Under the pieces are notes generated by a model, which worked only from the letters and a program-made list of their open reading frames with translations, made no database searches and was not told the DNA's origin. Positions 2,342 through 15,185 of a DNA stretch of 64,000 bases are shown here, in pieces (position 1 is the first letter of the stretch; each line of letters starts with the position of its first letter). A program made the position numbers and the translations under genes. Source of the stretch: Tetramitus jugosus (taxonomy: Eukaryota > Protista > Heterolobosea); contig OW569368.1 of the NCBI GenBank assembly GCA_937625935.1, positions 186,001 to 250,000 of the forward strand, read 5' to 3'.

Positions 2342-5300
2342 ATGTTGATTCTATTGAACAAGAGAGAGAACAGAGACGTGTTCTACTATATTCTATCATA
2401 CTTGTCTGTGAGTGACATATTCTTTGATTGTTCTCTCGTGTGCAAACAATGGTTTGAGTGTGTTCGTGGTGGTGGAGGCAGCAGTCTCAGCAATTGTGCT
2501 GAAAATGATTACTTTATTCGTGGGTACATGCCATTCCTAAAGAGTCAACATTCATCAATGATGAATCAACGCAAGCACATCTTGATGCAACAACTTCAGA
2601 TGTCTGGTGTTGTAGCTTCAGCACAGGATCTCAACCAGTATGGCATGTGGTTACCTATGAATGCCTATAGTGCTCTCAGTTGGGCAATGTTCATTCCTGA
2701 TCGACCCTATAAGACAGAGCAGAGTATTTATCAATTCATGTTGAAACATGTGAGCGTCAAGGAATTTTTGATGGTGGACGATCATGGTAATGATAATGAT
2801 GACAGTGGAGAGCAACAAGTGGTTGAGCGACAAATGATTCAGATCAATCTTCCTGTTTATCCCGATGTGGATCAAGGTGGATTGCCACAGCTTGTGAAAA
2901 CCATGTTTGAAAACTTTGGTCATTCGAGCAAGCAAGGGGCAGAAAATGGGAATGACAGTGTACGAGAGTTGAAATATGTGCCTGTGCTTGTGAATGCCCA
3001 ATCATCTGTATTGTATGAGAACGAGGCAGTTATACACTTGTTTGTTGATTCAGAGAGAGGTTCAATTGCCAAGATGGATGCAGAGCAGTGTCGAGAGCTT
3101 GACTTGGAAAATTTCATGGAGAAGGGTTACAGCGTAAATACTATAAGATTTTTGCCGCGCAGTCATGAATTATCGAGCAATAAGCCATCGATTCAAAACA
3201 GGAGATTGTTTCAGTCGTTGTTAGTTGCTTTGGGATTGTCAGAAATTGATGAATCGATTCCGTTGGCAACCTTTATCCTGACAATTGGTCAGTGTTTGAG
3301 GAGTGGTGCACTCAGAGATCAATATATGAGTCCAAAGGCTTCGATCAAGGCATTTGATCATTTGTATATTGATGATATGAGTCCATATTGGTTCCAGGTG
3401 ACCAAGAAATTGGTTTGCAAGCACGATCGATTATTGACAATCTCTCCTTATCATTTACCTCCAATAGAAAAGCTGTATCGTTCCATTAATGCAATAGTAC
3501 AGACGAAACAGTATGAAAACCAAATGCCGATCGTTCTTAAGCAGATTGCTACTCATGGAACGTCTGATATGCTTTCTCATTTCCTACAAACGATACAACT
3601 TGCGAATATTCAGGATCCATCAGCGCTGATGAAGTTATTCAGTAGCGGAAGAACAGTTGATCAATCGCCTCTAGTAGGATTGCTCGAAGGTCAACAGGAA
3701 CCTGCTCAGAAATTGAAAATGTTGTCGTGTATCCTTGATGAGGAAGATATGCGAAATTTGATTATTTCTCATAGAGTGCTGCATCATGCTACTCGGATAG
3801 CGAAGATATGTTCAAAGGATGTAGTGTCCGAGTATCACTCACTCATTACTGATATTCTGTTTGAATATCTCAGGTGGCAACAATTTCCCTCTGATATTCA
3901 CCCAGACTCGCTATGTCATAATAGTCTGATTCAAGTGTTCCCTCAATTTGTACACCTCCTTGCCAATTTACCAGAGAGAGTAAGGACTTCGTGCAGCAAG
4001 AGTATTAACACTCTCGTGAACTATAACAGAAATTCCAAACTCCCTACTCCATTGCTGCGAGCAGTGTTGAATTTCCCACAATATGTCAATTCTCTGCTTA
4101 CTTTTGGTGCAGATCCATTTGAGAGGAGCACTATGGAAATGGGATTTAATTCAAAGGCAAACCCCATTTGCAATTCAAGAAGCACGTTTTCAGCCGTTGA
4201 GGAGGCATGTTTGTGTCCACAACATCCTTCGTTAGAACGATTAGTTAGTCTCTCAAATAGTGAGCACTCCCAACCTACTTCACGAGCGGCATACGATGTC
4301 TCAAGCATATCACATATTCAAAAACCTATCAATATTGTACTTATTGGTCATCCAAAGTGCGGTAAGCGGTCACTCGTAGATCATGTTCTCAATCGTCCAT
4401 GCCAACACCTCAATAGTGAGGATTACATGTTTGCCCTATCTCCGAAAGAACAAATTAGAGCTATTCGCTATCGAAGTCAGTGCGGATTGTACAATAATTC
4501 TTGTTATGATGTTGAGTGTGATTTAACGTTTGATCATCAAGTCGTCAAAGTTCATATGAAGACTGTTCATATGTTCGAATTGGATGGCCTCATTGAAAAC
4601 CAACCAATCAAGACTGCAATTCATGAGAATGATCTCCACTCCTCAAGATGTTCTGTTCAGGGTGCAGATATTGTTTTTGTGTGCTATGATATCAATAATG
4701 AATACTCAATTCAAATACTAGAGGAGATTGAAGGTATCAAATCAATGTGCTCTAACAATACTGTAGTCTCAATATTGGGTCTAGGAGAGAGCGAACCAAT
4801 TCATCGACGAGTGTTTCGTTCTGTTGTTCACCAACATGCTAAGCACAATCAAGTACAAGCATACGAGTTAAATTGTAAGGTAGAGCGTTCACAAGTTGAT
4901 ATGATCATAAAGCGCTGCATGGGCCAGTTGAGCTCTGTTACGTCAGAGACGAGAGCGTATGAAAGGTCCTATCTGCCTCGGAGATGCTACCATGCCATTG
5001 ATCTCTCTGTTTTGAGCGCTAGAACGTTAACTCGCGCGATGTTGTCGTCCTTGCAGTCTGGTTTCAGCCAACCCATTTTGGGAATTAGATCTTGCCAAAT
5101 AACTATTGAGGAGTTGTACCAGTTTGTCCAAAATCTAACTGAATCAGACAAGTTATTATTATTTGACACACTACTGGGGTGTATCAATTCTTCCAAGTGG
5201 ACTGATGTTCAGCTACTGATGCTAACATTTATGCTTGAGTCTCCATCTCTGCTTCTTGAACGATTAACTTCTCTGTTTCACTCATTGGGCTCATCGCTAA

Positions 5301-6331
5301 ACACAGAGCAATGGCTCAACTTGATTGAGTGCATTGTCATTGCATCGGGTGGAGTTGATTCCAGTGCGTCAGACGTAGTTCATAGCCTTCTCTGTCAGGC
5401 CTATGATTACGTGCGAGCAGAGTGGCTACAAATTATCAATCGAGGAGACAGCGATGATGCTCAACAAATCGAAAGATATCTTATTCAAAGATTGTATGAT
5501 GCAGATTTTAGGACTAGCACCTCCCTCCAAACCGTCACTCAAACAGTTTTATTCTTGCTTCAGAATGGCTTCCTAGATGACATTACATTTATGAATCAAT
5601 TTTACGCTGTCATGTTTGACAATGTGCTCAGAGATCAACTAAGCATAGTCGAATGTGACTTTGTCGAGTCGGTCTTCTCTATTTGTCATTCAAGAATAGC
5701 AGAGCAATGTTTGTATTTGATCAAGCAGTATAAGAGCAAAGATGCGCACATGGACAAGGTGAAGAAGACTCATTCGCTTCCTATTGACTCGAGTGTGATG
5801 GTGTTAGTCGACGGTCTAACATACCACCAAGATGTCTCTCACGCACATCAATCTGCGAATGCGATTGGAGCGATGTCTGATATTACTGTTCCGTGCAGTC
5901 AGGTATTCTCTGAACTTACCTTCCAAAATGAAATGAACTTCCTTCGCATAACGCCTGCGCCGGACTGCAAACCAAGAATCTCATGGTTGCACCAGTATGG
6001 AACAGCTGAGATGCGATTTCATACGAATTACGATGTGAAGAACATATCAGTAAGCACAGCGCAAATGGCAGTTCTGCTTTTATTTAATGATGCAAATGTG
6101 GCAAAAACAGGACTGACGCTGTCACAAGTGCTGGACAAGCTATTGCCAACATCCGTTCGTTCTTGTGAGAAAATTGTGAGCACGTACAAGTCACAAGTGC
6201 AACCATTGATACAATCAGGAATATTGGTTACACTTGATGAGTCTCCCTTTGAAGAAGCATCTTCTGTTTTGACAGTGACAACCAAGAATTGGTCTTCAAA
6301 CCGCAAGAAGATCTCCATTCCCACAAATTAA
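2342..6331 (+). CDS. F-box / ankyrin-like / degenerate Ras-family GTPase / truncated cullin fusion protein
   Basis: 1329-aa ORF. F-box 'DVFYYILSYLSVSDIFFDCSLVCKQWFE'; ankyrin-like 'TPLLRAVLNFPQYVNSLLTFGADP'; P-loop 'IVLIGHPKCGKRSL' and 'GADIVFVCYDINNEYS'; cullin-like 'IEELYQFVQNL' and 'RISWLHQYGTAEM...VSTAQMAVLLLFND...LTLSQV'. Confidence 0.8.
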   Translation: MLILLNKRENRDVFYYILSYLSVSDIFFDCSLVCKQWFECVRGGGGSSLSNCAENDYFIRGYMPFLKSQHSSMMNQRKHILMQQLQMSGVVASAQDLNQYGMWLPMNAYSALSWAMFIPDRPYKTEQSIYQFMLKHVSVKEFLMVDDHGNDNDDSGEQQVVERQMIQINLPVYPDVDQGGLPQLVKTMFENFGHSSKQGAENGNDSVRELKYVPVLVNAQSSVLYENEAVIHLFVDSERGSIAKMDAEQCRELDLENFMEKGYSVNTIRFLPRSHELSSNKPSIQNRRLFQSLLVALGLSEIDESIPLATFILTIGQCLRSGALRDQYMSPKASIKAFDHLYIDDMSPYWFQVTKKLVCKHDRLLTISPYHLPPIEKLYRSINAIVQTKQYENQMPIVLKQIATHGTSDMLSHFLQTIQLANIQDPSALMKLFSSGRTVDQSPLVGLLEGQQEPAQKLKMLSCILDEEDMRNLIISHRVLHHATRIAKICSKDVVSEYHSLITDILFEYLRWQQFPSDIHPDSLCHNSLIQVFPQFVHLLANLPERVRTSCSKSINTLVNYNRNSKLPTPLLRAVLNFPQYVNSLLTFGADPFERSTMEMGFNSKANPICNSRSTFSAVEEACLCPQHPSLERLVSLSNSEHSQPTSRAAYDVSSISHIQKPINIVLIGHPKCGKRSLVDHVLNRPCQHLNSEDYMFALSPKEQIRAIRYRSQCGLYNNSCYDVECDLTFDHQVVKVHMKTVHMFELDGLIENQPIKTAIHENDLHSSRCSVQGADIVFVCYDINNEYSIQILEEIEGIKSMCSNNTVVSILGLGESEPIHRRVFRSVVHQHAKHNQVQAYELNCKVERSQVDMIIKRCMGQLSSVTSETRAYERSYLPRRCYHAIDLSVLSARTLTRAMLSSLQSGFSQPILGIRSCQITIEELYQFVQNLTESDKLLLFDTLLGCINSSKWTDVQLLMLTFMLESPSLLLERLTSLFHSLGSSLNTEQWLNLIECIVIASGGVDSSASDVVHSLLCQAYDYVRAEWLQIINRGDSDDAQQIERYLIQRLYDADFRTSTSLQTVTQTVLFLLQNGFLDDITFMNQFYAVMFDNVLRDQLSIVECDFVESVFSICHSRIAEQCLYLIKQYKSKDAHMDKVKKTHSLPIDSSVMVLVDGLTYHQDVSHAHQSANAIGAMSDITVPCSQVFSELTFQNEMNFLRITPAPDCKPRISWLHQYGTAEMRFHTNYDVKNISVSTAQMAVLLLFNDANVAKTGLTLSQVLDKLLPTSVRSCEKIVSTYKSQVQPLIQSGILVTLDESPFEEASSVLTVTTKNWSSNRKKISIPTN

Positions 6332-6524
6332 ATGAAAACTTTCTTTTGTATTATGTTAGCTCCTCAAACCTTGGTTCACAATTCGGTTGAACTGACGGAG
6401 AAAATTCACACCGCAACTTCAAAAACGCGCACAAAGTGCAACCACAAAAAAAAACAACTAAGCACAACAAGCGTACACGCAAAATTTAATCCATCAAATA
6501 AATTCACCAAACAACATCAATAGA

Positions 6525-8543
6525 ATGATAGACGATGATATAATCAGAGATATTGGTGGATTCTCCGACGAAGACCTCGAAGGCGTCGATATTAACTCCG
6601 CCATTTCCGCGCCACAAACTTCCACTACAGCCCCTTCCTCCTCCTCCTCATCATCAAGCACCACCACCACCACCACAACAGCATCATCATCATCAACTAC
6701 ACCTCAACAATCATTTAACATTGATCGAATGAGTGATGATGAGAACAGTGATGACGATGATCATGATGACCTTGGTACTGTACCACTGGACAATGATCCC
6801 AACGATCCCATTGTTCGTCGATACGAAGTCTTTCTCACCAACAACCTTGCCAATAATTTATTTTTGTTTCAGTACCCTTTGCGCGCCAAAACGAGACCTT
6901 ACGATTTCAATCAATTGACTGAAGTTCGTTTCAAGAAGGAACATAAAAAGATGGAGATGGAGTTTGAGTTGAATACGCAGAGTGAGCACTATGATCAAGA
7001 CAATCCACAGTCCATGTCCTCATTCACGCTGGCCTCCAAGGTTGTTCCGCTGCGAACGAATTATGCAGTCGGAGTAACGAGAGGAAATCATTTGCATATT
7101 ACTCCGCTGCAAAATATTTTACAGTTCAAGACGAGTCTGGAGCATTTGGAGAGAGATGGTGGATTTGCGGGTATAGGTGAAAAAGTGGTCAACAGAGAAG
7201 ACAAGGAAAAGGGACAAGCAAGTGCCTCTTCTGCTTCTTCTTCCACCGGAAAAGCACAGCCTCAATTGGTGCAAACAACGTATAGATCTCAGGCCGATGA
7301 GAGAGCCAGACAAAAATCATATGAATACATGAAACAACAAGAGCAGGCAGAGAAGGATATGACCATGGAGTTTTATCCATCGGATCATTCGACTGCAAGA
7401 CAAGTGTTTGAGCGATTGTTTGCCACGTATGATAATCCAGTGAGCTTTGACATGTCACCGGCAGCATATCTGGAAACGTTGGTGCCGTATAAGCATGATG
7501 TCATGGCACGGTTGAAGGGAGAACAGATATCGATGGATATCATTCAGAAGATGCCTGGTGCAAAACAGGTTCAATTTGCCCTGTTTGCAGCCAATATTCT
7601 CAACTTTGATCGTATTAAACAAATGGCTACCAACGTGAAGGACGATGAACAATTGATTAGCATAATTGAAGACAATGCTGATTTAGTGAGAGGATGCTGG
7701 GTGTTGAAGAGTCACTTGAAACAGTTGAATCCGAACAATCCGAATCAAAAGTTCACAATGACAGTGGAAACTGCTTGTCGCGATTATCTAATGTACCTGT
7801 TCCACAAACAGCCTCTAGTCGATCGTATTGCATTCACAGAAAAGACAAAGTTAGATACGGAAGTGGCAAAAGAAATGCTCGAAGAGATTGCACTCATCAA
7901 GGAAGACAAATCCAGCTCAAGAAGACACGGTTATTGGTCGTTGAAGTTACCACCTGATGAGAAGTTTATGGCAAAGTATCCAGAAGTTGTCGAAAGACAG
8001 AATGAAGCATGGAAGATGAGAACACAGCAAATTTTGAATAATGTCGAGTCAAGCTTCAAGAACATTAAGCCGGCAGTGATTAGTGCAGGAGCAGGAGTTA
8101 CGAGACCACAAGATATCAATAAGGCCGTAGTGAACTTTATTAGAACTCAGTTCCAACAACATGGTGTCTGTACATTTGCAATGCTTGCAGATGCGTTCAG
8201 AACGAGCCGAGCAAACAGTGAGGCACTCTCTAACGTTGGCAATGACCATTTCAAGAATGTTTGCCAACAAATTACCAGATCATTTTGCACTGATCAATAT
8301 CTGATTTTGAAGCAAGCAGATCTACCAGAGGCCGAAGCACCAATGAGAGATGCAATCATAGAAATTTTGGAGGAGCGCAAGGATGAAAAGCTAACCAGAC
8401 AAACGATTAGTGACGAAGCCAAACAGCGACTTCCATCAGACAGCAAGCCACCACAACTTGGTACAGTCATGAAGATTTTGAACGAACTGGCTGTGGATAC
8501 CCAAGACGGTTTCTACGTTGTCAGAAAACCTGCAATCCAATAA
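6525..8543 (+). CDS. POLR3E: RNA polymerase III subunit RPC5 (Sin-like)
   Basis: 'DPIVRRYEVFLTNNLANNLFLFQYPLR', 'TNYAVGV...LHITPLQNILQFK', 'ADLVRGCWVLKS' match the RPC5/Sin_N family. Confidence 0.9.
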   Translation: MIDDDIIRDIGGFSDEDLEGVDINSAISAPQTSTTAPSSSSSSSSTTTTTTTASSSSTTPQQSFNIDRMSDDENSDDDDHDDLGTVPLDNDPNDPIVRRYEVFLTNNLANNLFLFQYPLRAKTRPYDFNQLTEVRFKKEHKKMEMEFELNTQSEHYDQDNPQSMSSFTLASKVVPLRTNYAVGVTRGNHLHITPLQNILQFKTSLEHLERDGGFAGIGEKVVNREDKEKGQASASSASSSTGKAQPQLVQTTYRSQADERARQKSYEYMKQQEQAEKDMTMEFYPSDHSTARQVFERLFATYDNPVSFDMSPAAYLETLVPYKHDVMARLKGEQISMDIIQKMPGAKQVQFALFAANILNFDRIKQMATNVKDDEQLISIIEDNADLVRGCWVLKSHLKQLNPNNPNQKFTMTVETACRDYLMYLFHKQPLVDRIAFTEKTKLDTEVAKEMLEEIALIKEDKSSSRRHGYWSLKLPPDEKFMAKYPEVVERQNEAWKMRTQQILNNVESSFKNIKPAVISAGAGVTRPQDINKAVVNFIRTQFQQHGVCTFAMLADAFRTSRANSEALSNVGNDHFKNVCQQITRSFCTDQYLILKQADLPEAEAPMRDAIIEILEERKDEKLTRQTISDEAKQRLPSDSKPPQLGTVMKILNELAVDTQDGFYVVRKPAIQ

Positions 8544-10098: not shown

Positions 10099-13000
10099 AT
10101 GAGCAAGATCACCCTCGGTTCTCGAAGAGTAGTTGTCAAGAGTGCTACTACAGCCTCAAATGCCCCCACTTTCACACCTCAACAAACACAGTGTGTTGCC
10201 TCGTGGATCGAACACGTCGTTGAACAACCGTTGATCAATGCAAGTGACTTGCACCAGTCACTGAAAAACGGTTCTGTATTATGTCAATTAATCGGTGTGT
10301 TAAACGGTACAAAAGATATGGGTCCACACAGAGAGCCTTCCGTACCATTGAGAGAACTGGAGAATATTGCCAGTTTTATGAAATCATGTCAGGATTTTGG
10401 TGTAAAGTGTGGTTGGACGTTGAGTGCGTTGCACAAGGGATCAGATATGAACTCTGTATGTTATTATTATCACATTGTTACAAAACAGCATTTTTTCCAC
10501 TCCAGTGTCATCACCTTTCATTGAGACCTGGTGTTGCGGAGTCCATTTTTTTCTAGTTCATCAGACATCAAGCTCACACAAACTTCCTCTTGTCCGCAAC
10601 TACAATTTTTTTTTCTTTGTGTGATAAAATGTAAAAATGAATGTAATGTGTAATGATGAATCACCAGGTGATTGATCATTTGGTGCAACTATCAGAGAAA
10701 TCAAAGCAAAATGCAATTGAACAAACAACGGCAGAATATAGAGGTCCATTCCTAGACTTCAACTCACCACTGCCAACACCATTCAACCTCTCTGCATGTC
10801 AAAAACTAAAGGTTGAATGTGCCAAGAGTAAGCCTACACCTACTATTACTACGGCTACTACTACTACCACTACCACCACACCTACTACTACACCCACTTC
10901 TTCTTCTTCTTCTTCACCTACTACACCTACTTCTACTTCGACTGCTGCATCCGCAGCAACACCTGTAAAAATGAATAATTTAGCTACGAGTGGTGGTAGT
11001 GTTGATTCACCATCACCAGCTACTCCTCCTCCATCTTCAGCATCATCGTCGTCGTCAACAACGAACGCATCTCCAGTGCTACCGAGAACTGGTTCTGGTA
11101 TTTCTATGTTAGGTAAGAGACCAATTATTAGAAAAACAACGACAACAGATTCCTCTGCTGTCAATTCGCCACCTCCTGCAGATAGTAGTAGTAGTAGCAG
11201 CAGCAGCAGTAGTGCATCTCCATCAAATTCATTGAGTCCTAGTAGAACAGTGATTGTCGCTTCAAAGAGAGCCAGTATTTGCTTAAAATCATCTCCTCTG
11301 TCAAACAACTCTGCTACGGGTGGAGCAGCAACTCATGAAGCTGGAGCTTCGGGCAATAACGGAAGTCCTATCACCAAGTCAAAAGTTGTGATTGGAAAGA
11401 AGCCTGTCAGGGTAAGTATTTTTATTGTTGGCATGCAATCGGTTTAGCAAATTTGTTTACAATTTATTTGTTGTTGTTTCTTATTTTTCGTGTGTGATTG
11501 ATTACTTAGGTTGTGGGAAGTCGTCCTGTATTGTCTCAAAAGGAAATTGAGAGTGTGAATGTTGATATTGGAGACGATAGAGCCGTTTCCTATCATATTA
11601 CACAGTTGAAGACAACAAGTGGTAATGCTTCTCCAGAATACTTGCAGTCATTGGTCACTGTGATCACTCAACAAAACCGTGAATGGGTTGAACAGTTTGT
11701 CAAGGATGGTGCCATCAAGATTTTGGGAGAGATTCTGAACAAGAATGAAGCATCTTTCAAGACTGTGAAGCAAAACACAATCCAAGAGAACTGTATTGGC
11801 TGTTTGAAGGCCATTGCTGACAGTGAAGTATTTTATGGATTCGTGAAGAATTCAAAGACTGTTGCTTCTGTTGCCTTGCTATTGGACATCAAACTGAGAA
11901 GTGCCAGTCACTACACCATCAAGTCAAAGATTTGTGAACTGTTGGCTCTGATTTGTACTTTTTCCGAGGATGGTTTCTGGTGTGCATTGGATGCTATGAC
12001 AGCATACAAGAATACAAAGAAGGAAACTGCAAGATTCAGTGATTTGGTGGGCAGTTTGGCCCCTCAATTCAGATCTGATGCCAAGGTCGTAACCGCCATT
12101 GGACAGATTCCATCAGAGTTGAAGCAAGACACACAAGGATACGCACTTTTGTTTATTAATGCACTCATTAATTCGCCAAAGGATCCTTCAACTCGTTCCT
12201 TCATTCGTGAGGAGTTTACCAAGCTTGGAGCTGGCAAGTATGTTGAGCAGATGAAGGAGGATATTTCCACAGGAGTTATCACTAGCAAATTGCTCATTTC
12301 GCAGGTGAAGGAATACGAAGAAGAAATGTTGAGTGCATTGATCGATGAGGAGATGACCACCAATACAACAGATGCTGCAGAGGCTGACGATGATCATGAG
12401 GATGGTGTATCAGCCGAGTCACCTACAGAGGAAGTGAACATAGAGGATGTCTTGAGATCATTGAAGTTAAAACTGGGCAGAGCCGCTGGAGGTACGAGTT
12501 CTCTTGCTGATGTGCTCAAATCTCTGTTGAAGCTTTCACAAGTCACAACCAATGATTCTATCCTATCTACCAGTTTGAAATCAATCAGTGGTATGTTGAA
12601 ACATCTTGTGGAGCAATCAATGAGCAAACAGGACAAGGGTCAAGTTGAAGATGTACTGGGTGAAATCAGCACATTGAACAAGAGAATCAAACAACTTGAA
12701 AAAGATAAGGAGCTGTCGAAAACCAGCGACAAAGTGCTAGACAAGTTAGCAAGTGAAAAGAATGAACTGATATCTGAAGGCAACAAGCTGAAAACAGAAT
12801 TGAATGTTTTGGCGGATCAGATTCAAAAGATTACCACCGAGAAGAATTCTTTATTGAATCAGTTGAAGACAAAAGAGCAGGACTTGGAAAACTCCAAGAA
12901 GGGTGATTCTGAACAAGTTACACACCTGAAAACAGAATTAGATAATCTTCGAAGAGACATCTTGGAGAAAGAGAAGTATGCTGTTCAAAAATTCGAAAAG

Positions 13001-15070
13001 GAAGTCATCTCAAAGATAGAAGGACAGCTGACAGTGATCGATAGACACACTGGTGATATCCCAATTGCGTCCTCACTCAATGATCTCCCTCCACTCGAGA
13101 AAGCAATTGCCAGAATCTCCAATACTCACTTTATCGTTCTCGACAGAAGTATTCAAGAAGCATTGGACAATGAGGCCAACACCACTAACACTGATGATGA
13201 TAGCGCAATTACTAATTTGAAACTTGAAGTTAGGATGTTGAAGCAACAGAGAAATACTCTGTTGAAGAAGTTGGAAGAAGGTGGCTCTTCTTCAACTGAA
13301 GTGAAGAAGCTCCAAGGTGAGATTGAACAACTTCGCAAGCAACTGGCAAGTGCTCAGTCAATGTCCGCTTCCGTTCCGCCACCACCCTCCATTAATGTTG
13401 TTGATACCGAATCCACTGATACCGCAGGTGACATGCCTCCCCCACCACCACCAATGTCTGGCGTTGCACCACCACCTCCTCCTCCTCCTGGTATGATGGG
13501 TGGCCCTCCACCTCCACCACCAGGTCCAATGATGGGTGGCCCTCCTCCACCACCGGGCATGATGGGAGGACCTCCACCACCTCCTGGTATGATGGGTGGT
13601 CCTCCACCTCCAGGTATGATGACAGCCAAAGCTGGTCCTTCTCTTCCACAACTTCCATCGATCGGTACCCCTTCAAAACCAATGAAGAATTTCTATGGAG
13701 ATGCCATTGCAAAGAATAAGGTTTCTGATACAATTTGGGTCAAGGGTGGTATTATTGATGAGATTAACTCTGTCAATATTGATGTGAATGAAGTCGAAGA
13801 GCTGTTCTCTAACGAGACGACAACAAAGGCTAGCACCTCATCAGAGGTTGACACTCCAAGAAAAGCCAAGAAGGAGCTTGTGTCATTTGTTGAACCTCAA
13901 AAGTCTACCAATGTGGCTCTACTTCTCGGTTACATGAGAATGGAACCAAAGCAGATCAAGGATGCTATTGTCAATATGGACGAGGAAAAGTTGTCTCAGG
14001 CAAATATTGAGGCATTGAAGGACAAGACTCCAACGCCTGATGAAATTGAACAATTGACAGCATATACTGGAGATTACAATCTCTTGTCAAAGACCGATCA
14101 ATTCTACTTGGAGATCAAGGATATTCCAAAATTGAGCACACGGTTGAATTGTTGGGCATTCAAATTTAAGTTTGCCAATGATGTCACTCAATTGTTGCCT
14201 GATATTGATACCCTCACATTAGCTGTTACTGAAGTTCTGGATAGCAATAGATTTAAGCGATTCTTGTCTGTTGTTCTAGCCGTGACAAACTTCTTGAATG
14301 CCAAGTCATCAAAGAAGGACTCCTATGGTTTCAAGCTGAAGTCACTTGTTAAGTTGGCCGATACCAAGTCATCTAAGAACAACATGTCTCTATTGCAATA
14401 TATTGCTGTATTCTGTGAGAAGAATGAGCCTGATCTGCTCGAACTGGGTAAGGATATGGCACATTTAGATGCTGCTACTCGTGTCAGTTTACCAGACGTC
14501 GTGAATGAAGTGAAGAAGCTGCAAATGGGTGTCAAGCTTGTGGACTCTGAAGTGAAGAACAATGAATCAAGTTCTGACAAGTTTTCCAAGGTGATGAAGA
14601 GTTTCTTGAGTGATGCACAGGAGAAACTTGATGACATTACAGGTGCTTTGATTAATTTGGATGAACAATTGACCACATTAACCAACTCGTATGCTGAAGA
14701 GGCTGCCATGATCAAGAACCCTACAGAGTTCTTGCAGAATTTGAAGAAATTCATCGACCTCTACCACGAAGGATACAGAGCCTATCTGAGAAGAGTTGAA
14801 CTTGAACGAAAGAAGCAGATGCAAGCAGCCACAGAAGAAAAGATGAAGACACAATTAGCAGAGGCCATGAACAGAAGAAAGTCGATTCGTTTGTCAGAAG
14901 TGCACCTAGACACAACCGAAAAGAGCTCTGGAATCAGATCAGCTCTTGTCAATGGTGACGCCTTTAGACACAGAAGATACTCCAGATTTGAACAACCAGG
15001 CTCCCAAATGCCCGTCAATCCATTCCCAGGTACCTCAGGGCTGAGGAAAACGAGCTTCTCTCAAAAATAA
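10099..15070 (+). CDS. Diaphanous-type formin with N-terminal calponin-homology domain; exons 10099-10455, 10668-11411, 11510-15070
   Basis: CH domain 'LHQSLKNGSVLCQLI...LENIASFMKSCQDFGV'. Phase-0 introns 10456-10667 (GTATGT..CAG) and 11412-11509 (GTAAGT..TAG) join three ORFs in frame. GBD/FH3 'LLFINALINSP', poly-Pro FH1, FH2 'VLAVTNFLN...YGFKLKSLVKLADTKS'. Confidence 0.88.
13434..13620 (+). repeat. FH1 tandem repeat (GMMGGPPPPP)n within the formin
   Basis: Repeated ggtatgatgggtggccctccacc-like units encoding profilin-binding polyproline tracts. Confidence 0.85.
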
Positions 15071-15112
15071 AAGATTGGTGTTGCTCTCCCACTTGTTCCA
15101 CTTAATAATGCA

Positions 15113-15185
15113 AAAGCTCACACGCACCCAACCTGAATTGGCAGTAGTCACAGAAGATGGTCCAGATCGGGCGAATGCGAACTCC
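15113..15185 (-). ncRNA. Candidate small hairpin RNA (pre-miRNA-like), copy 1
   Basis: 5' arm GGAGUUCGCAUUCGCCCGAUCUGG pairs with 3' arm UCAGGUUGGGUGCGUGUGAGCUUU at 23 of 24 positions, with 9 G·U pairs and a 25-nt loop. It ends in a U4 run. 28/31 nt recur at 63970-64000. Confidence 0.55.

Follow-up and report, generated by a model that had tools for sequence, protein, structure and literature searches.

In the best-studied cullin-RING ligases (CRLs), receptor, adaptor and cullin are distinct subunits that can be exchanged, and NEDD8 gates activity through its attachment to the C-terminal winged helix of the cullin (WH-B; Pfam Cullin_Nedd8, PF10557). This domain, jointly with Helix29, provides the NEDD8 acceptor, and it restrains the RING as long as it is unmodified. 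CAND1 needs both ends of a cullin. Removing the C-terminal tail of CUL1 reportedly relieves autoinhibition, a result attributed to Yamoah et al. in PNAS 2008. To our knowledge, cullin-homology domains occur only in ubiquitin-ligase complexes, that is, in CRLs and the anaphase-promoting complex/cyclosome (APC/C). Ras-superfamily folds have been met in related settings: RhoBTB carries a Ras-superfamily domain with impaired catalysis fused to a CRL docking element, and EhRabX3, an Entamoeba tandem Rab with a pseudo-GTPase domain (PDB 5c1t), has degenerate nucleotide motifs. In CRL7-FBXW8, an un-neddylated cullin serves as receptor and is bridged via FBXW8-SKP1 to neddylated CUL1-RBX1, and neither neddylation nor ligase activity is found in the purified assembly itself, which acts as receptor for CUL1-RBX1 (PMC9507964). 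Here we describe a gene of the heterolobosean Tetramitus jugosus that lies on contig OW569368.1 (C25 of the 56 contigs of the 26.35-Mb genome) within a window of 64,000 nucleotides (contig positions 186001-250000), and that joins modules of this kind in one chain. We consider it highly probable that this fusion gene is real and restricted to its lineage, and that it represents a cullin-superfamily member of new architecture, in which an F-box, a conserved N-terminal domain, an ankyrin-like region, a pseudo-GTPase and half a cullin follow one another and WH-B is missing. With moderate confidence, in an estimate that merges architecture and mechanism, we further lean towards the fusion protein being a NEDD8-independent scaffold or receptor of the cullin-RING type.

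Its homology domain places the fusion protein in the cullin superfamily, but two defining features of a canonical cullin are lacking. With the canonical cullins CUL1-5 it shares, in the same order, the end of cullin repeat 3 (CR3), the four-helix bundle (4HB), the alpha/beta region, the first winged helix (WH-A) with its 'VSTxQ..LLLFN' signature, and a linker motif of the 'KIKIP' type. It differs from them in the absence of the CR1/CR2 adaptor-binding arm and of the Helix29/WH-B NEDD8 acceptor, and in about 900 foreign N-terminal residues that include the F-box and the GTPase fold. The gene as a whole, and the parts of it that make up the half-cullin, are as follows (window positions):

2342 to 6331, + strand: the whole fusion gene, one open reading frame (ORF) of 1329 amino acids plus TAA, with ATG start, collinear with the relatives P0001 and P0002

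5099 to 5455, + strand: helical bundle, a possible equivalent of CR3, residues ~920-1038 (seen in the structural model only; 25-33% identity, the least conserved part)

5456 to 5776, + strand: cullin 4HB, residues ~1039-1145 (hhalign and structural model; aligns to CUL1 from ~416 onward)

5777 to 5971, + strand: cullin alpha/beta region, in cullins the docking site of the Rbx1 strand, residues ~1146-1210, with a loop insertion of ~13 residues (alignment A5 and hhalign)

5972 to 6328, + strand: cullin WH-A with the signature ISVSTAQMAVLLLFN and a tail ending 'KISIPTN', residues ~1211-1329 (Pfam Cullin, hhalign and structural model; 43-54% identity)

The assignment of the C-terminal region is carried first by profile comparisons. 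Pfam Cullin (PF00888) matches residues 1212-1263 above its cut-off (35.2 versus 33.2 bits), precomputed Pfam annotation lists Cullin_AB in all three relatives of the protein (weakly in P0002), and protein-language-model features link residues 900-1329 to clusters of cullins (0.92; 193 features in common). In an hhalign comparison of two profiles, one from the four family members and one from seven canonical cullins encoded in the same genome, 272 columns aligned with 96.8% probability (E 2.8e-10), and residues ~1017-1329 of the ORF paired with cullin residues 374-673 of 761. Identity to the genome's own cullins amounts to no more than 13-16%. In the profile alignment, 'IDSSVMVLVDG' pairs with the cullin 'IDxSVxVLTxG', RISWLHQYGTAE with 'RKLxWxxSxGxA', VSTAQMAVLLLFN with 'VSTxQxxxLLLFN' and, at the C-terminal end, 'KISIP' with 'KIKIP'.

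Structural modelling points in the same direction. A first AlphaFold2 (AF2) model, built on a four-sequence alignment, was poor (mean predicted local distance difference test score, pLDDT, 55.8), and a second one, restricted to residues 880-1329 and built on 14 sequences including ten canonical cullins, was moderate (mean pLDDT 62.1), with pLDDT values of 78-90 in the 4HB, 60-82 in WH-A and <50 in the alpha/beta region. The preliminary description of this locus had proposed a cullin at the C-terminus, and the structure check agrees with it, as all of the top 50 Foldseek matches of the second model in the PDB are cullins or APC2, though the canonical cullins in the alignment bias the model towards the cullin fold. 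VIA-align superposes model residues 88-444 on CUL1 336-679 and residues 40-444 on CUL1 262-680, and residues 40-158 pair with CUL1 ~262-415, a CR3-like bundle; these alignments, like those to CUL2, CUL4 and CUL5, have Z scores of about 10-11, which lie within the chance range for helical proteins. Profiles and motifs thus argue that the cullin part is a C-terminal half, consisting of the end of CR3, 4HB, alpha/beta region and WH-A, and the model suggests that possibly all of CR3 is included. Two details of the preliminary description have to be given up: the cullin is not a compressed one, as CR1 and CR2 are absent, and the parallel of 'IEELYQFVQNL' to cullin repeat 1 is not supported, because nothing before residue ~920 resembles CR1 or CR2. 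In hhalign, the alternative alignments that pair residues 92-890 with the genome's own cullins stayed below 1% probability.

APC2 is the other known protein type that came up among the Atlas-feature and Foldseek matches, and it shares with the fusion protein a cullin-homology C-terminal half that is un-neddylated. It differs by its TPR_ANAPC2 domain and its ANAPC2 WH-B, neither of which was found in the fusion protein. A separate bona fide APC2 is encoded in the genome (contig C22:361404-363166), with TPR_ANAPC2, cullin-homology exons and ANAPC2 winged helix, split by introns. A weak cullin match beside a Ras gene on C22 was rejected as a lead, as it represents this intron-split APC2 followed by an ordinary Ras-family GTPase gene of 229 amino acids; from the sequence, the neighbourhood of the two looks coincidental.

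The ORF was said in the preliminary description to stop just where the NEDD8-acceptor winged helix should begin, and this holds for the whole family, since the end aligns before WH-B in all four members. The fusion ORF ends 5 residues past 'KISIP', the place at which Helix29/WH-B starts in the 7-8 ordinary cullins of this genome, and the C-terminal end of the model aligns to CUL1 ~679-683, just ahead of WH-B. After the 'KI.IP'-type motif, P0002 has 2 further residues, P0001 13 and P0003 22. Significant matches to PF10557 are found at eight places in the genome, all of them canonical cullins, and 8 of 8 cullin loci have a Cullin_Nedd8 match; six of the ordinary cullins finish with the '...Y.A' sequence that is usual for WH-B. 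A downstream Cullin_Nedd8 exon, which would have spoken against the preliminary description, was looked for with PF10557, and contig C25 has no match; nor did the next gene, which encodes the RNA polymerase III subunit RPC5 and starts 194 bp downstream, give a Cullin_Nedd8 match. The intervening sequence is short:

6332 to 6524, no strand: spacer of 193 bp to the next gene, RPC5 (6525-8543, + strand)

There is therefore no space for a WH-B exon between the two genes. The common end of the four members, together with the lack of any nearby PF10557 match, argues that the loss of WH-B is ancestral to the family and genuine, and not an artefact.

The canonical cullin at contig C5:100239-102332 has its Cullin_Nedd8 match in a separate short frame ~200 bp past the main ORF, an arrangement that implies an intron ahead of WH-B. 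WH-B exons can therefore be split off in this genome, and none lies near the fusion gene.

The single ORF of 1329 amino acids stands as it had been described, with no internal stop in 1329 codons from ATG to TAA. Relatives were sought by an exhaustive HMMER search with residues 131-1329 against 1.84 billion representative proteins, and just three were found, namely P0001 (1355 amino acids, from a Logan assembly), P0002 (1312 amino acids) and P0003 (688 amino acids), the latter two from JGI records; their database names are 'hypothetical protein' and 'GTPase SAR1 family protein'. Both P0001 and P0002 match the ORF from end to end at 37-39% identity, with identical domain order and identical end point, and the proposed succession of F-box, ankyrin-like repeats, pseudo-GTPase and cullin thus recurs in both. 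From this full-length collinearity we conclude that the ORF is not a chance one. That several genes have been read as one ORF, or that a WH-B exon has been overlooked, is hardly credible, given the absence of stops, the recurrence of one continuous order and one end in three species in which contigs and downstream neighbours differ, the RPC5 gene behind its narrow spacer, and the lack of PF10557 on the contig. Two in-frame insertions of ~29 and ~20 residues relative to both orthologues are specific to this species (residues ~75-104 and ~142-162; window positions 2567-2653 and 2765-2827), the second one being acidic and of low complexity. Retained introns were ruled out as their source, as plausible splice sites are absent, and the fusion gene therefore looks intronless.

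The downstream neighbours differ among the loci of the other family members. Partial synteny exists with the P0002 contig, where a small CH-domain gene and then a formin lie 3' of the fusion gene (10337-15177) as they do in the window (10099-15070), and on this ground P0002 is taken as an orthologue. The distant relative P0003 has a gene call that starts at GTG and at first sight encodes a bare Ras-cullin protein. Positions 1-543 of its contig, on the - strand, hold an ankyrin-like stretch and the P-loop 'GRPNVGKKG', collinear with residues 502-678 of our ORF (BLASTP E 3e-7), and this inverted piece sits right before the GTPase-cullin ORF (555-2621, + strand); flipped, it would enter the first residues of P0003 in frame. 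A stand-alone Ras-cullin protein was therefore rejected in favour of a truncated gene call, and the distant relative, too, has the module of ankyrin-like region, pseudo-GTPase and half-cullin. The inverted piece represents either a fold-back chimera of assembly or amplification, or a real inversion.

The unfamiliarity of the architecture that the preliminary description had remarked on is in keeping with this rarity, with three relatives per 1.84 billion representatives, and with the literature on Naegleria and other protists, in which we found no description of a catalogued F-box/GTPase/cullin architecture, the coverage of that literature being incomplete and absence thus not proven. No paralogue was found in the own genome, word-indexed protein searches with the whole protein, P0003 and the module alignment A3 gave nothing beyond the known relatives, pattern scans of metagenome contigs (two) and of viral contigs gave no further ones, phmmer with the single fusion protein returned 0 matches in the PDB, and NCBIfam yielded no meaningful match.

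Ahead of the half-cullin, the chain is divided as follows:

2369 to 2476, + strand: F-box, residues ~10-45 (Pfam near cut-off, P0001 above cut-off, profile matches to F-box structures; 44-70% identity among orthologues)

2477 to 2653, + strand: variable linker with a species-specific insertion, residues 46-104 (alignment A1; 31-44% identity)

2654 to 3781, + strand: conserved N-terminal domain, candidate substrate-binding part, residues ~105-480 (42-53% identity, 112 invariant residues)

3782 to 4261, + strand: ankyrin-like repeats, residues ~481-640, the clearest repeat at ~567-596 (hhalign against the genome's Ank_2 alignment; also present upstream of P0003)

4304 to 4966, + strand: Rab-like pseudo-GTPase, residues ~655-875 (Pfam Ras, Foldseek Rab/Rho, best PDB sequence match EhRabX3, degenerate G motifs)

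The N-terminal segment is very probably an F-box. In the fusion protein, residues 12-42 reach 23.0 bits for F-box-like (cut-off 24.3) and 18.5 bits for F-box (cut-off 20.5), the orthologue P0001 exceeds the cut-off of PF00646 (21.7 versus 20.5 bits), and the F-boxes of FBXO42, FBH1 and FBXO44 are the three best PDB matches (E 0.002-0.25) of a profile built from the three N-termini. With its 44-70% identity, the segment is among the best-conserved parts of the protein. The longest well-conserved stretch is the domain at residues ~105-480, which had no match in Pfam, NCBIfam or the PDB; Atlas features of residues 100-640 give a sub-threshold hint (0.79) of Ank/Arm repeats. This ~375-residue domain probably selects substrates. 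Residues ~481-640 are probably ankyrin-like: a profile of residues 470-645 matched the Ank_2 alignment of the genome's own ankyrin proteins with 87% hhalign probability (pairwise E 3.7e-6) over residues 481-596, mostly through one repeat around 'TPLLRAV...LLTFGADP', and Pfam Ank had no match at an E threshold of 10, where HMMER filters discard most matches above ~0.1.

The region that follows had been called a pseudo-GTPase, and both halves of that term are justified, as the Ras fold is present and G1, G3, G4 and G5 are degenerate. Pfam Ras matches the isolated segment with 22.8 bits (cut-off 21.6), and Foldseek of the GTPase part of the first AF2 model, where pLDDT was moderate, has Rab/Rho GTPases as top matches with template-modelling (TM) scores of 0.6-0.73 by target. 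The best PDB sequence match of the family profile is EhRabX3 (E 1e-3, a marginal similarity), which shares the Rab-like fold and differs by having no ubiquitin-ligase modules. In an alignment with five Ras-family GTPases from the same genome, the motifs for nucleotide binding and hydrolysis are not kept: G1 reads GxxxxGK-R where GTPases have GK-S/T (the distant relative has K at that position), G3 DTAGQ has become KTAIH, G4 NKxD has become LGES, and G5 SAK has become LNC. Four of five G motifs are thus lost, a degeneration common to all members of the fusion family, and the Ras-fold region is, by these motifs, predicted to be catalytically dead. RhoBTB differs in that it has only a BTB adaptor element and never a cullin part, whereas the fusion protein combines its GTPase fold, minus these four motifs, with the half-cullin. 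The Rab-like character of the GTPase, in fold and in best sequence matches, and the N-terminal domain without known relatives would also suit a protein outside the ubiquitin system, for example a membrane-traffic or cytoskeleton scaffold, in which the cullin-like and GTPase-like parts are structural relics and the F-box serves only the protein's own turnover. We regard this as improbable, since two independent ubiquitin-ligase modules stand in one chain and both are among its best-conserved segments, and since cullin-homology domains are not known to occur outside ubiquitin-ligase complexes.

The partners that a NEDD8-independent cullin-RING-type protein would need are encoded in the genome. 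There is a single Rbx1 (contig C43:273296-276472) in two exons, with the intron between the N-terminal strand region and the RING, and a Skp1 gene on contig C12. A second zf-rbx1 match (contig C24:279058-282225) is an APC11-like protein with a C-terminal extension of ~170 acidic, His-rich residues.

For the fusion protein as such a scaffold or receptor, we propose the following mechanism. As in cullins, in which the alpha/beta domain and the N-terminal strand of Rbx1 co-fold (PMC9507964), the alpha/beta region would accommodate this strand of the one Rbx1 that the genome encodes. As WH-B is absent, nothing would hold the closed state; the RING would not need neddylation to be free and would lie beyond the control of the COP9 signalosome (CSN), and the half-cullin would also probably escape CAND1, because CAND1 needs both cullin ends. 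In place of CR1-CR2 plus adaptor, a built-in stalk and substrate receptor would be formed by the N-terminal domain, the ankyrin repeats and a GTPase fold that works without nucleotide, and the conserved F-box would bind Skp1, possibly coupling the protein to CUL1-Rbx1 as in CRL7-FBXW8. Taken as a whole, with Rbx1 docking, Skp1 binding and ligase activity all inferred, this mechanism is quite possible but tentative. In its strongest form, a self-contained single-chain ligase scaffold independent of NEDD8, CSN and CAND1 whose F-box also couples to CUL1, it is rather doubtful.

Several observations weigh against an active scaffold, in addition to the limits on the second model and on its Z scores given above. 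The alpha/beta region is diverged, does not keep the cullin 'WP' in this species and contains the 13-residue insertion, and it is modelled at pLDDT <50, which makes Rbx1 docking no more than putative. The F-box of the T. jugosus protein lies slightly below the Pfam cut-offs, and its leading Leu-Pro is missing. Furthermore, CUL7's own RBX1 is catalytically locked in CRL7 (PMC9507964), and therefore a cullin-like platform need not be active.

CRL7-FBXW8 is indeed comparable in several respects: it contains an atypical un-neddylated cullin with an F-box physically attached, its receptor function lies in additional N-terminal domains, and its exposed F-box/SKP1 is able to bridge to CUL1-RBX1 (PMC9507964). 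In both cases the cullin region starts late, with CR2 in CUL7 and with CR3 or later in the fusion protein. CUL7 differs in that it keeps WH-B and binds a separate F-box protein non-covalently, while the fusion protein has the F-box in the same chain and WH-B gone, and for domains of the CUL7/CUL9 type (CPH, DOC, ARM) no Pfam match was obtained in the fusion protein at E 1. As CUL7 is reported to be vertebrate-specific, the resemblance would be convergent. On the CRL7 precedent of a receptor without activity of its own (PMC9507964), the fusion protein could be a substrate receptor only, that is, a very large F-box protein of a canonical Skp1-cullin-F-box (SCF) ligase, in which the half-cullin is non-catalytic, its Rbx1 being absent or locked, and neddylated CUL1-Rbx1 does all of the transfer. 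The conservation of the F-box, the presence of Skp1 and the diverged alpha/beta motifs agree with this. However, WH-A and the tail motif are conserved as well as the F-box is, and 4HB, alpha/beta region and WH-A are kept in order, features that suit a generic binding module no better than a retained Rbx1 platform; we judge the receptor-only role unlikely. The same two docking elements, in the absence of CR1 and WH-B, could also make the protein a decoy or regulator that titrates Skp1 and/or Rbx1 off canonical cullins without ubiquitylation and beyond the control of neddylation, CSN and CAND1. This alternative, which the preliminary description had raised, is highly improbable, as the ~900 conserved non-docking residues of N-terminal domain, ankyrin-like region and pseudo-GTPase would be hard to explain, and as the gene is single-copy.

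The genomic surroundings of the fusion gene are unremarkable. The window has a G+C content of ~41-42% and dense, long and mostly uninterrupted ORFs on both strands, and the neighbours are all ordinary eukaryotic genes, encoding RPC5, a Rad51-like protein, a formin, an FtsJ methyltransferase, tubulin cofactor D and a Vps34-type PI3-kinase. The RPC5 ORF has an acidic N-terminal extension of ~92 residues ahead of its Pfam domain.

Members of the family occur only in a few little-studied amoebae or protists, which limits the reach of the finding. If our reading of a NEDD8-independent cullin-RING-type protein holds, the conserved pseudo-GTPase would be a structural module inside an E3, and if the strongest form of the proposed mechanism is true, nature would here have produced an 'always-on' cullin-RING ligase and a counterpart, in one chain, of the two-cullin assembly that CRL7-FBXW8 and CUL1 form in vertebrates. 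The fusion protein would bear on the need for neddylation and CAND1 exchange, and on the repeated evolution of two-cullin assemblies like CRL7-CUL1. An F-box hard-wired to the RING-docking half of a cullin without WH-B would be a natural experiment on the minimal catalytic cullin platform.

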